From positions 96,104-157,407 of the forward strand of contig JAWQFM010000010.1 in NCBI GenBank assembly GCA_033442325.1: a stretch of 61,304 bases of DNA, read 5' to 3'. The notes beneath the pieces are model-generated. The model was not told the origin of the DNA and ran no database searches. It saw nothing but the letters and a program-made list of their open reading frames with translations. This DNA is from Salpingoeca rosetta (lineage: Eukaryota; Protista; Choanoflagellata). Below are positions 47,165 through 58,885 of this stretch, piece after piece. Positions within the stretch are counted from its first letter, which is position 1. The number at the start of each line of letters is the position of its first letter. The position numbers and the translations under genes are program-made.

Positions 47165-47505
47165 CTAGAGGGCGTTTTCATTGCGCAGCTTGATGGACTT
47201 TGCGCCGTCGTTCTGCACGTCAAGCGGGTGAAGGTACTTGACGGTGTTCTCGTTGATGGAGAGCGTGCTTGCGTCCATCTTGTCCGTGTACAGGCACCCG
47301 TTGAGGTGATCGACCTCGTGTTGCACAATGCGCGCTGTCCAGCCGCTCAGCGCCACAGAGACGTCCGTGCCCGTCACAGCACACAGGCCCGTGAGGTGGA
47401 TGTCGACGGGCCGCGTCACGTGCGCGCTGTATCCTGGTATGCTCAGGCAGCTCTCGCGGTGCGTGCTCATCTTCTTGCCATACTTGAGCCGTGGGTTGGC
47501 AATCG

Positions 47506-47571
<66 letters not shown>

Positions 47572-48486
47572 TGGGACACAGTGACATCGAATATGGCTGC
47601 TAGCACGAATGAAGCATTCATTGCACTACGGAGACAGCGATATACAGAGACACACTGACACAGAGACAGACAGAGAGCCAGACAAAACACACAGACACAG
47701 ACACAGGCACAGACACAGACACAGACACAGACACAGACACAGACACACACACACACACACACACACACAGACGCACACAGACGCACACATACACACATAC
47801 ACACACACTCTCTCTCCCTCTCTCTCTCTGTTTACCTGTGAGCGGGACGGGCCGCATGTCCAGCATCTTGATGTCGCGGAAGTTGGTCTCCAGTTCAATC
47901 ATGTCTGGTGTCACCTCCATCACAAACAGCTGCGCAGTGTAGGTGGTAGAGAGGTGGTGAGCGAGGAGACCGGGAGGCTTGCTCAAGCAGATAGACAGAC
48001 ACACAGGCAGACGCACAGATACAGACGGATACGCACACACACATAGAGACAGACAGACAGACACACACACACACACACAGAGGCGCATGCACTGACCTGC
48101 AAGGACTCGCCAATCTGAGGTGCGCAGAGCCCAAAGCCTTTGTCCTCCCGTAACCGGGCTGACAGTGAGTCCACAAGGTTCCGGATGGAGCCATCCTGTG
48201 TGCAAGAGCGTTGCCAGTGGCAGTGGCAGTGCGATCGAGGTGAGGGTCGTCGAAGCGCAGTGAGTGGAGCGGGGAGGGGGGCAAGTGGATGCAGGGGGAC
48301 GGACGGGGAGACCATGGATGCAGAGAGAAGAATGGAGTGGAACGAACAGAAACACACACAGACACAGACACACAGACACACAGACACACACAGACACAGA
48401 CACACACAGACACAGACACACAGACACAGACACAGACACACAGACACAGACTCACACACAGACTCACACGCAGACACACAGACACA

Positions 48487-48571
<85 letters not shown>

Positions 48572-48691
48572 GCTTCCCACCGTGATATCTGAGCGCTGGA
48601 TGGGTGCTGCCTTCTCCCTCAAGACGGGGTGCCCTGCTTCGATGATCTTCGGCAGTGCCCGCCCCCTTCGTATCGCCCGCAGCAGTCGCAT
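47165..48691 (-). CDS. PDF: Peptide deformylase, probably mitochondrial, 4 exons
   Basis: Basic presequence MRLLRAIRRGRA; AGHPVLR; motif I GFGLCAPQIG; ANP; motif II ESCLS; motif III ARIVQHEVDHLNG. Confidence 0.93.
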
Positions 48692-48868
48692 GTCGTGTAT
48701 TTGCTTTCTTGCTTGCTTGCTTGGGAAGTGCACACGTGTCGTCGTCGTCGTTGTTGTCGTTGCGTTGTTGTTGTGCGTGAACTCCACACCCTTCTCTTCC
48801 TTCCTTCCTTGTTGGTTTGTTTGTTTCTTTCTTTCGCGTCAATGCCGAGACGGCTCGAACAAGCGTGG

Positions 48869-49313
48869 CTACTTGTCACCACCACCACCACCACCACCAA
48901 ACATGCGCTGCGCGTTTGTGAACGCGTGTTCTGCAACCACTTCTGGGTCCTCGCCCTTGCACCCGCTTACAATCTGCAGTTGGGTGTGCGTATGTGTGTG
49001 TGTGTGCGCGCGCGCGTATGTGTGTGTGCGATGAGATGCAGGGACAGACACAGACACACACGGACAGACACACACACACACACACACAGACAGACAGACA
49101 CACACAAACACACACACACACACACACAGACACGCACACAGACACAGACACACAGGCAACAGCGCACCTCGAGGACTTGTGTGATGAGGGCGGGCTCATT
49201 GCGGGACTTGACGTACTTGCCATCCTCCCACTTGTCAGCCTTCTTCGCTTGCACCTGCACACGCGTGCATTGGTATGTGATTGTGTGTGAATGAGTTGTC
49301 AACGCCACATGTG

Positions 49314-49361
<48 letters not shown>

Positions 49362-51463
49362 TGCAAGCACACACACACACCTTTGTCTTGACGTATTGGA
49401 AGCCGGCGTGTGATGGGCGAACTTCACACCAGGGGCAGTCCGTCTGGTGTGGAGGCGAGGGATGATGGTTAAGGGAGAACGCGTGCTTCCAGGCAGGAGA
49501 CTGAGGACAAGCCAGATGGCCGCGCATATGCAGAGATGCAAGTGGAGACACACGTACAAACACGTACAAACACGTACAAAGGCACACACACGTACAAAGA
49601 CACACACACACACACACACGTGCATACACACACACACACACACACGTGCATACAAACACACACACACACACACACATGCACACATGCACACACATACACA
49701 TGCAAACGCCCGACTGACCTCGAGCATGAGTTTGTCGGTTGGGAGATGCTTGACGACATCAAGGTTCTCCTCCTTGCGCAAGGAGCAGCCGTTGAGGCCA
49801 ATGTAGAACCCCATCTCAATCAGCCGCAGCGCCACGTCCAGCGGGCCGTCATACGAATGCACAACTCCGCCAACGATCCTGCGTACGGAGAGCAGGGCGG
49901 CGGCGGTGTTGGAGATGGTGACTTTGTTGCTTGTTGTTGTTGGAAAACTCTGCTACATTCAAGTGGCATTCGACAGCCTCACACACTCACACGCACACCA
50001 CACCACACACACACACACACGCACACACACACACACACGCACACACACACACACACATACACACACACACACCACACCACACACACACACACACACACAC
50101 ACACACCACACACATACATGTGTGTGCATTGCCCCACCTGTGGCGGTTTGGCTCCATGATGTGGAGAAAGTCGTCGTGTGCATTGCGCAGGTGGAGGAAC
50201 ATCGGCAGCTGCGTCGCCTCCGCAAGATCAATCTGTCGTTATGGTCATGCACAGCGAAGATATTGTGTGTGTGTGTGTGTGTGTGCGTGTGTGTGTGTGT
50301 GTGTGTGAAGGATGGATCACAACACCTTGCTGCTGCTGCTGCTGCCCACGTGAATACAAACACCAGCGCAAGCGCCGTACACTAATCCGCGCCACACGGC
50401 AGATGGCTACCTGGCGCTTGAAGTACGTTGCCTGCACGTCCTTTGGGCAGAACTGAAGGCGGTCATAGTCAAGCCCCGTCTCACCAACAGCAACCACCAC
50501 CGACCTGTTCTCCTCAATCAGCGCTTGCAGCGACTACACGCAGTTACGCACGCACACACACGTACATGAGGTGGGAGGCGACTTATCACTCACGCGCTGG
50601 TTGAGCACGTGCATTCAACGAGTTTCACGCACACGCGCATGCACATCTGCACACAAACCTTGTAATAAGCCTCTGGATCGTCAAGAAACTCCTTACACCT
50701 TGTAGGGTGACACCCTACAGTGCATGTGATGCCCTCTGCGTGGAGAGGAGTGACGACAGAGGCGACGGAGGCGACACAAGAAGAGACACGGGGACGACAA
50801 GACGCGAGAGCCATGGCATTGGGTGAGGGTGCGCTTGTGCGCGCGAAGAAGAGACAACATGCAGGAGAAGTGGTTCGGCGGATAGCGCACCGTTCTGTTT
50901 TGCCATTTCCACGGCTTCCTTGCTGTCAGCCAAGTTAGTACCCGTCACCATCATCCTCTCAACGCCTGAAGTGGGGTGTGACAGACATGATTTCAGTTCA
51001 GCGCAATTAGTTGAAGCGATGACGTGTGAAGGCTAGCGCAGGCGTGACGAAGAAGGGAAGGGGAAGCGTGACGATGAAGGGAAGTGGAAGTATGCAAAAC
51101 AGACACACAGACAGCCAGACATCACAGACACACACACACAGACACACACACAGACACAGACACAGACACACACACACGCACACAGACAGACACAGACACA
51201 GACACAGACACACACACACACACAGACACACAGACACACAGACACACAGACACAGACACAGACACAGACACACACACAGACACAGACACAGACAGACACA
51301 CACACACACACCAACCAACCAACCAACCTGCATCTCGGGCACGCTGGAGGATCTGTGCAAAGTCGGACGGGTGCTTCTGCTTCCCTCTGTATACCCCTCT
51401 GAACACGGGGTCTGTGAGGTTGGCTCCAATGTCAAAGAACCGCAACCGCGCTGCACTGCTCAT
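48869..51463 (-). CDS. TATDN1: TatD-family nuclease TATDN1, 9 exons
   Basis: [73 protein letters not shown]|TDCPWCE and RNEP. Confidence 0.95.
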
Positions 51464-51618
51464 CGTGCTGATCGTGGTGGCAAGTTGGGAAGAATGGCCA
51501 CAGCATACACATTTTTCGGCACAAAGTGGTTGCATGCACACATCCACACACACACACACACACATCCAGCACACACACGCATCTTCATCTTCCTTGCTCC
51601 TTGTTGGTGTGGTAGGGC
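51464..51618. promoter_or_regulatory. Very compact putative bidirectional promoter (155 bp between divergent ATGs)
   Basis: TATDN1 ATG at 51463 (-) and SMIM4 ATG at 51619 (+). Confidence 0.55.
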
Positions 51619-52073
51619 ATGGGGTTTTGGAAGGTGGCTGCGAAGGTGAGCGCTGCGTCGTTTGTGCTTGGAGTCTCCATCGAGTGGTTTATGCTCCACG
51701 TCCAAGTTGGCGAGGAAACCTTCTGTAAGTTTGTTCGGCGGCGCGGGCGTGTTTGCAATAATGTACAGCGTGTTTGCAGAACTGGCCACACACTTGCCTG
51801 CCATGGAACACATGCACACACTGACACACTGACACGCACACAGCATACGCACACACACTTACTCACACACACACAAGACACACACACTCACTCACACTCA
51901 CACATACACACTCACATTCTCACTCACTCATGCCACTGTCGGTTTGTATTGTAGACGACACGGTGACACGACTGGAGGCAGAGAGGCGAGTCCAAGACAG
52001 TCAGGCACCACCACAAGGCGATAGCGTCGCTCATTCAACACAACAGCAGCAACAAGAGCAGCAAGGGCGGTAA
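51619..52073 (+). CDS. SMIM4: SMIM4/UQCC5 (fly sloth1) complex III assembly microprotein, 74 aa, exons 51619-51724 and 51955-52073
   Basis: [35 protein letters not shown]|[12 protein letters not shown] matches the family pattern FVLGxxxEWxMxxxxVGxETFYD. GTAAGT donor, TAG acceptor. Confidence 0.88.
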
Positions 52074-52095
52074 CGAGTTTGGGCACCGTGACACC

Positions 52096-52512
52096 ATGCC
52101 TGGGCGTTGGTCTGTTGGGCAATACGTGGCCCTGTGCTTCTTCAGCATTTCCTCCATGATGCTCGGAGCATCCATGACACACAACTACTACAAGCCCGAC
52201 TTGGTACGCTCACATAACATGTATGCGTGCGTGCGTGCAGGTGCGCATGTGTGTCCTTGTTTTTTTTTGGGGGGGGGAGGGGCCTGTGTCACACACCTTG
52301 TTGCGTGCTGCTGCGTTTACTGTTCTTCCACTTTGCACTTTTTCTGACCACTGCTGGTATTGGCACTGCTGCTGTTGTTGGTGTTGTTCTTCTTCTGTGC
52401 GCAGACCATTCCGGCCGAGCCCGTCAAGCCCAACAGCGTGCTGAAGAAGCGAACCGTGGCCATTGTGCCGCCACGTGGCGCACGCGACGACGACGAGTCA
52501 TCAAACCATTGA
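52096..52512 (+). CDS. UQCC6: BRAWNIN/UQCC6/C12orf73 (fly sloth2) complex III assembly microprotein, 71 aa, exons 52096-52203 and 52405-52512
   Basis: [36 protein letters not shown]|TIPAEP matches the family pattern MP...Y.......M..GA...H.YY.PDLTIP. Confidence 0.9.
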
Positions 52513-52518
52513 TAGCTC

Positions 52519-52580
<62 letters not shown>

Positions 52581-52584
52581 CGTG

Positions 52585-52615
<31 letters not shown>

Positions 52616-52734
52616 CAGTGTGTGTGTGTGTGTGTCTGTGTGTGTGTGTGTGTCAGTGTGTGTGTGTGTGTCAGTGTGTGTGTGTCTGTGAAGGCGTGTT
52701 CCTTGCTCCGCTAACACACAAGGGCCGAAGAATC

Positions 52735-52740
52735 AATAAA
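52735..52740 (+). terminator. AATAAA polyadenylation signal after BRAWNIN
   Basis: First AATAAA downstream of either microprotein ORF. Confidence 0.55.
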
Positions 52741-52775
52741 GACATTCACAAATCGCAATTGGTGTGTCGGCGAAG

Positions 52776-58885
<6,110 letters not shown>

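Follow-up and report, generated by a model that had tools for sequence, protein, structure and literature searches.

Organisation of the locus

The stretch of Salpingoeca rosetta DNA surveyed here (the window: 61,304 nucleotides of contig JAWQFM010000010.1, assembly GCA_033442325.1) carries a compact forward-strand unit of two short, intron-containing reading frames next to the 5' end of a divergent gene. ORF1 (51619-51724 joined to 51955-52073; intron borders GT at 51725 and AG at 51953-51954) forms a spliced frame of 225 nt that encodes 74 aa, and ORF2 (52096-52203 joined to 52405-52512; GT at 52204 and AG at 52403-52404) encodes 71 aa. The features of the region are as follows.

51400..51486, - strand: 5' end of a divergent TatD-type DNase gene, with its ATG near 51462 (from the end of RNA contig X9 and the NCBI gene call)
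51531..51618, + strand: 5' UTR, with the transcript start within the CA-rich repeat 51531-51594
51619..51724, + strand: first coding part of cistron 1 (UQCC5/SMIM4 orthologue), with a predicted membrane helix and the start of the IEWFM..VGEETF motif
51725..51954, + strand: intron 1, 230 nt, GT..AG, phase 1 within a Tyr codon (T|AC)
51955..52073, + strand: second coding part of cistron 1, ending in TAA (52071-52073); RNA depth 75-97x
52074..52095, + strand: intercistronic spacer, 22 nt, without an ATG and without a splice acceptor in use
52096..52203, + strand: first coding part of cistron 2 (UQCC6/BRAWNIN orthologue, PTSG_12147), with the Pfam DUF4516 domain
52204..52404, + strand: intron 2, 201 nt, GT..AG, phase 0, after KPDL
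52405..52512, + strand: second coding part of cistron 2, ending in TGA (52510-52512)
52513..52760, + strand: presumed 3' UTR (from sequence only), with a (GT)n microsatellite at about 52515-52690 and AATAAA at 52735-52740

The second exon bridges the two cistrons: cistron 1 ends and cistron 2 begins within it, with the spacer in between. No ATG occurs in the 5' UTR within 51560-51618. An earlier note on this DNA, made from the sequence alone, had described a gap of 22 nt between the TAA and the ATG at 52096, and the spliced ORFs bear this distance out; its remark that the first AATAAA follows ORF2 is likewise correct, the one at 52735 being the only copy within 51600-52800. Both frames are split by introns, as it had proposed, and both of these GT..AG introns are exactly removed in the RNA-seq data. 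The expectation that ORF callers would miss both frames holds for ORF1 and fails for ORF2, which is annotated as PTSG_12147.

Identity of the encoded proteins

Both peptides were searched against the Pfam profiles, using the curated cut-off of 27 bits that applies to each of the two families concerned. ORF1 matches UPF0640 (PF15114; SMIM4/UQCC5) with 37.2 bits (E 2.7e-9; residues 15-51 on profile positions 29-65), and ORF2 matches DUF4516 (PF14990; C12orf73/BRAWNIN/UQCC6) with 82.4 bits (E 1.8e-23; profile positions 1-45 of 46). The assignments to SMIM4/UQCC5 and BRAWNIN/UQCC6 made in the earlier note are thereby upheld. ORF1 also fits the UQCC5 class in its length (74 aa, where about 60-80 are expected) and in the presence of the core IE(W/Y/L)FM..V..G.ETFYDT..RLEA, and an alignment of the S. 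rosetta sequence with three environmental relatives and Barroeca monosierra has 18 invariant columns. ORF2 shows the UQCC6 pattern of an N-terminal MP.G, one hydrophobic helix and then H..YKPDLTIP; across an alignment of 12 UQCC6 homologues, M1 and P2 are nearly invariant, and M21, G24, H29, P34, L36 and P39 invariant.

An exhaustive phmmer search of 1.84 billion proteins with ORF2 as the query returned 22 hits, among them Salpingoeca macrocollata, Hartaetosiga gracilis, Didymoeca costata, Barroeca monosierra, the sponge Amphimedon and frogs. A Lithobates protein named by NCBI as 'ubiquinol-cytochrome c reductase complex assembly factor 6' is matched with 36.7 bits (E 3.9e-4). A C-terminal motif, (I/V)A(I/L)V.PRG.R, lies beyond the 46-residue Pfam domain and is common to the choanoflagellate UQCC6 sequences; it is absent from the sponge sequence and from some of the lower-scoring unnamed matches. 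In S. rosetta it is encoded by the second coding part of cistron 2, as AIVxPRGxR. Word-index protein searches, in which these peptides are short queries, returned for each peptide only itself or one near relative, and sequence searches of the PDB revealed no relative of solved structure for either peptide.

The two peptides have been proposed to be distant paralogues (Bosch et al. 2022, eLife 11:e82709, PMC9681215). Comparison of the ORF1 and ORF2 families with hhalign, using small choanoflagellate-centred alignments, gave a probability of 1.7% over 14 columns, which leaves the paralogy unsupported, not refuted. A complex prediction for the exon 1 part of ORF1 (35 aa) with ORF2 residues 1-48 returned a score of 0.07 ('no answer') and carries no weight either way.

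Annotation, copy number and selective constraint

The region 51400-52800 is base-for-base identical to scaffold GL832963.1 of the assembly GCA_000188695.1, and the ORF2 product is 100% identical to the hypothetical protein PTSG_12147 (XP_004995173.1, UniProt F2U737). The NCBI annotation of the region consists of three gene calls: on the - strand a TatD DNase, and in addition the DUF4516 protein of 71 aa and a protein with ankyrin repeats. ORF1 has no call, and its exact protein is absent among about 15 billion public proteins; therefore, ORF1 is an unannotated S. rosetta UQCC5 orthologue. The annotation of S. rosetta is thus corrected by the addition of UQCC5/SMIM4, and PTSG_12147 can be named UQCC6.

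Throughout the 55.4-Mb assembly, UPF0640 and DUF4516 each match this locus only, and neither has a monocistronic back-up copy. The exon-only genome match to UPF0640 reaches 26 bits, just below the cut-off of 27, because the intron splits ORF1. When S. rosetta is compared with an uncultured close relative (L007), dN/dS is 0.15 for ORF1 (0.04 when restricted to codons 1-48) and 0.12 for ORF2, values to be read with the synonymous sites saturated (dS 1.6-1.8). By these low ratios, ORF1 and ORF2 are both maintained as protein-coding sequence by purifying selection. Together with the single-copy status of both families, the ratios bear indirectly on whether both ORFs yield functional peptides, which is probable.

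The same data bear on the idea that ORF1 is merely a regulatory upstream ORF of PTSG_12147 whose peptide has no function. The public annotation, which leaves the region untranslated, and the want of an ORF1 protein in the public collections would agree with it. However, the UPF0640 match lies above threshold, 18 residues are invariant across five relatives, dN/dS falls to 0.04 over the first 48 codons and the intron position is common to animal SMIM4 genes, and we regard the idea as hardly credible.

Transcription of the locus

RNA was placed on 51400-52520, a range that stops short of the long (GT)n repeat, from one stranded raw run (X21, 101-nt reads) and three contig sets (X7, X9 and X14). 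Two splice joints, and no other, are present in the stranded run, from 51724 to 51955 (57 reads) and from 52203 to 52405 (35 reads). RNA of the + strand runs unbroken at 75-97x over 52046-52121, that is, across the stop codon, the spacer and the second start; the depth is 44-73x in exon 1, zero in intron 1, and zero or near zero in the introns overall. Two further studies each supply a contig in which all three exons are joined (X14, 494 nt, 2011; X9, 576 nt, 2023), and the contig set X7 placed nothing on 51400-52520. The stretch is present in 20 S. rosetta runs; runs from five studies contain about 0.34-0.39 of the sampled words, close to an exon-only share of about 0.44.

The bicistronic mRNA that the earlier note had postulated is therefore very probably real, both splices being present in reads, the spacer covered continuously and both ORFs spanned by contigs. 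That note had also named what would speak against it, namely a poly(A) site before 52096 together with a transcription start of its own for ORF2, or a want of joint coverage. These signs were looked for and did not appear: neither a poly(A) loose end nor a cluster of molecule starts occurs before 52096 in the stranded run. The sole molecule-start cluster reported is at 52178, inside ORF2; clusters are reported only from a fifth of the depth upward, and a minor start in exon 2 could lie below that threshold.

Two separate transcription units, with a promoter and start for ORF2 in exon 2 or intron 1 and a continuity produced by overlapping RNAs, would account for the depth of exon 2 being somewhat above that of exon 1, and short reads and assembled contigs, which draw their continuity from other than single cap-to-poly(A) molecules, are no proof of a single molecule. 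Against two units stand the zero depth of intron 1, the empty interval 51955-52096 in which no start cluster falls, the larger number of junction reads for intron 1 than for intron 2, the want of poly(A) loose ends, and a gap of 22 nt that is too small for a terminator plus a promoter. Two units are accordingly judged very improbable.

No + strand RNA covers 51476-51530, and full depth is reached at 51595. Contigs X9 and X14 reach 58 nt and 48 nt upstream of 51595, respectively, that is, to 51537-51547; reads inside the CA repeat 51531-51594 were masked, and the transcript start is located to the repeat, not to the base.

Within intron 2, a few reads (depth 1-6) map at 52350-52388; they show G>T at 52381, and at 52388 a loose end leads from them into unrelated GC-rich sequence. 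Their most likely source is a low-complexity stretch of similar sequence at another place in the genome, rather than an alternative exon.

Linkage in other choanoflagellates and in environmental contigs

Eight environmental contigs extend sufficiently far upstream of a DUF4516 ORF to show what precedes it, and in seven of them a UPF0640 ORF lies just before it on the same strand. Three of these (L007-L009) represent one organism, so that the linked environmental set comprises six distinct arrangements. The spacer measures 24 nt in L002, 59 nt in L003, 71 nt in L016 and about 89 nt in the intron-containing L006. In L007-L009, marine metagenome contigs of an uncultured close relative of S. rosetta, it is 27 nt long, and both ORFs have the same two intron positions as in S. 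rosetta. L004 has an AT-rich spacer of 265 nt (1943-2207) with a scaffold gap; this spacer contains four ATGs in addition to the run of N, and may hold two transcripts. Upstream of the weak DUF4516 ORF of L015, no recognisable UPF0640 was found in 1.2 kb (1-1231).

Among named species, a Barroeca monosierra gene model (P0002; EukProt gene7415-527_t, 111 aa) combines an N-terminal part of UPF0640 type with a C-terminal part of DUF4516 type, skipping the membrane helix of the second protein. A splice that would fuse ORF1 to ORF2 in this manner was considered for S. rosetta and rejected, only the two joints given above being seen; therefore, the fused model is probably an artefact of the gene predictor over a bicistron. 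It still shows the adjacency of both families. An exact-protein contig look-up for four sequences present only in EukProt (P0002, P0003, P0006 and P0007) found no DNA. For linkage in these named species, the evidence at hand comprises the fused Barroeca model and the Didymoeca ORF, which begins at nt 268 of its transcript.

Comparison with known bicistrons

The same bicistron has been reported in S. urceolata, a sea squirt, lamprey and Drosophila (Bosch et al. 2022). The earlier note had mentioned choanoflagellate bicistrons and had allowed that this may be a confirmation rather than a discovery, which the published S. urceolata case makes good; a pre-metazoan origin of the SMIM4-BRAWNIN bicistron was already proposed in 2022 and is not new. 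A literature search pairing Salpingoeca rosetta with the term bicistronic found nothing on this locus. What is added here comprises the S. rosetta instance, the unannotated UQCC5, the six environmental arrangements, the Barroeca fusion model and the lamprey intron match, and the ancient bicistron gains read-level RNA and a genomic gene model in the most-used laboratory choanoflagellate.

Drosophila sloth1-sloth2 (CG32736-CG42308) resembles the S. rosetta unit in having the same families in the same order on one mRNA, in different frames and with a very short spacer. Both units also have an intron in phase 1 that interrupts the Tyr codon following ETF/TNF in cistron 1, and both have A at -3 of the second start. 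However, the fly spacer is 5 nt long as against 22 nt, cistron 2 is intronless in the fly and contains an intron in S. rosetta, and the first AUG of the fly has C at -3 (weak), whereas that of S. rosetta has G at both positions -3 and +4. Leaky scanning is reporter-tested in the fly and proposed for S. rosetta. In the S. urceolata transcriptome (Richter et al. 2018), both ORFs occur in the same order on one assembled transcript, comp15074_c0_seq2. Here the spacer is 84 nt and ORF1 has several internal ATGs, some of them out of frame; the S. urceolata case is known from a transcriptome assembly only, whereas S. rosetta has a genome, introns and read-level RNA.

In the linked SMIM4 and C12orf73 genes of the lamprey (Petromyzon marinus), one intron splits the Tyr codon at ETF|Y (phase 1, T|AC) and the other follows RPDL (phase 0), so that the three-exon layout with a bridging middle exon is the same; the spacer there is about 330 nt. 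The lamprey and Drosophila intron positions were read from Supplementary file 1 of Bosch et al. 2022, the main text of which does not contain the word 'intron'. As the positions and phases are common to S. rosetta and lamprey, the three-exon layout with its bridging middle exon appears to date to the choanoflagellate-animal ancestor. The conserved introns would be a small addition to the published account, in that a linked gene structure, beyond mere adjacency, predates animals.

In jawed vertebrates, SMIM4 and C12orf73 lie on different chromosomes (PMC9681215). Human SMIM4 (UQCC5) and C12orf73/BRAWNIN (UQCC6) belong to the same Pfam families and size class as the S. rosetta products. They differ in being separate monocistronic genes and in having a demonstrated complex III function, which for S. 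rosetta is inferred. For the role of the human proteins in complex III assembly, Bosch et al. 2022 refer to Zhang et al. 2020 and Dennerlein et al. 2021, and they also state that human UQCC5 and UQCC6 levels depend on each other; the Drosophila sloth1 and sloth2 peptides co-immunoprecipitate (PMC9681215). A mitochondrial inner-membrane location and a part in cytochrome b/complex III assembly are known for UQCC5 of human and fly, and a part in complex III assembly for UQCC6 of vertebrates and flies. By analogy with these orthologues, both S. rosetta products would be small inner-membrane proteins acting jointly in early cytochrome b/complex III assembly, and their single mRNA may keep the supply of UQCC5 and UQCC6 coupled.

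Taken together, the locus is best explained as the S. rosetta orthologue of sloth1-sloth2, a single three-exon unit giving a two-cistron mRNA with UQCC5 followed by UQCC6, a reading to which we assign a probability of roughly 0.88.

Start contexts and translation of the second cistron

The ORF1 start, gggcATGg, carries G at both -3 and +4, a point absent from the earlier note, and is not weak by the vertebrate rule, which may not be that of S. rosetta; a literature search found no start-codon consensus for S. rosetta. The ORF2 start, accATGc, has A at -3. Between the two starts the spliced RNA contains one ATG, in frame and in the context tttATGc. The single in-frame internal ATG and the A at -3 of ORF2, both of which had been pointed out in the earlier note, are thus recovered in the spliced RNA. 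A Phe codon invariably precedes this conserved internal Met and places U at -3. Over nine linked loci, A at -3 occurs in none of the nine ORF1 starts and in seven of the nine ORF2 starts (Fisher p = 0.002, the loci not being phylogenetically independent).

A depletion of internal ATGs was considered as a signature of leaky scanning and rejected. The one ATG observed compares with a mean of 1.36 in dinucleotide shuffles (P(<=1) = 0.59) and of 1.85 under synonymous resampling (P = 0.37), neither of which is significant; the count is at chance level, and the S. urceolata ORF1 carries several internal ATGs.

Given a bicistronic mRNA, leaky scanning is on balance favoured as the main route to ORF2. 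In its favour are the Drosophila reporters, the contrast at -3 over the nine linked loci and the U at -3 of the internal Met; the context of the first AUG in S. rosetta, the chance-level ATG count and the internal ATGs of S. urceolata speak against simply carrying the fly model over. In the proposed mechanism, 40S subunits would load at the cap, and part of them would start at the first AUG and produce UQCC5. The others would pass both this AUG and the in-frame internal AUG with its U at -3 and would start at the AUG of cistron 2, with its A at -3. With G at both -3 and +4 of the first AUG in S. rosetta, some re-initiation downstream of ORF1 may contribute as well.

Re-initiation could also be the principal route on the same mRNA, with the 40S subunit retained after the TAA and restarting 22 nt downstream. 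A first AUG with a purine at -3 and G at +4 (gggcAUGg) should capture most of the scanning subunits, the spacer is without an ATG, and the spacers of the relatives are mostly short (22-89 nt), all of which this route would suit. Re-initiation is, however, generally inefficient once an ORF is as long as 74 codons, and a gap of 22 nt gives little time to reacquire a ternary complex. Moreover, neither the sequence nor the length of the spacer is conserved (5 to 265 nt), and in Drosophila, where reporters showed leaky scanning for sloth1-sloth2, a strengthened sloth1 start lowered downstream translation (PMC9681215). Re-initiation as the main route is thus possible but somewhat unlikely. The joint proposal that the layout has been kept since the choanoflagellate-animal ancestor and that cistron 2 of S. 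rosetta is reached largely by re-initiation is doubtful; if true, S. rosetta would be a tractable non-animal model for the decoding and persistence of eukaryotic bicistrons.

Neighbouring genes and repeats

Repeats lie near both ends of the unit: CA-rich repeats occupy part of the 5' UTR (51531-51594) and of intron 1 (51780-51930), and a (GT)n microsatellite of about 180 nt (52515-52690) fills most of the presumed 3' UTR. Both transcript ends are hidden, because the repeats break the RNA contigs and were masked in the placement of reads. The AATAAA at 52735-52740 ends 35 nt before the ATG of the ankyrin-repeat gene (+ strand, 52776). On this spacing the ankyrin-repeat gene would either have an extremely short 5' UTR, or the transcripts would overlap or run on.

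On the other side, an X9 contig (945 nt) of the divergent TatD mRNA ends at 51486, and the 5' ends of the TatD and bicistron RNAs are about 45-60 nt apart, constituting a shared promoter region. The TatD-type DNase Pfam match covers 49299-49862 on the - strand, within 47165-51486. After the TatD gene, on the same strand, follows a peptide deformylase (PF01327, 83.9 bits, 47165-47587), with its N-terminus likely to lie near 48700.
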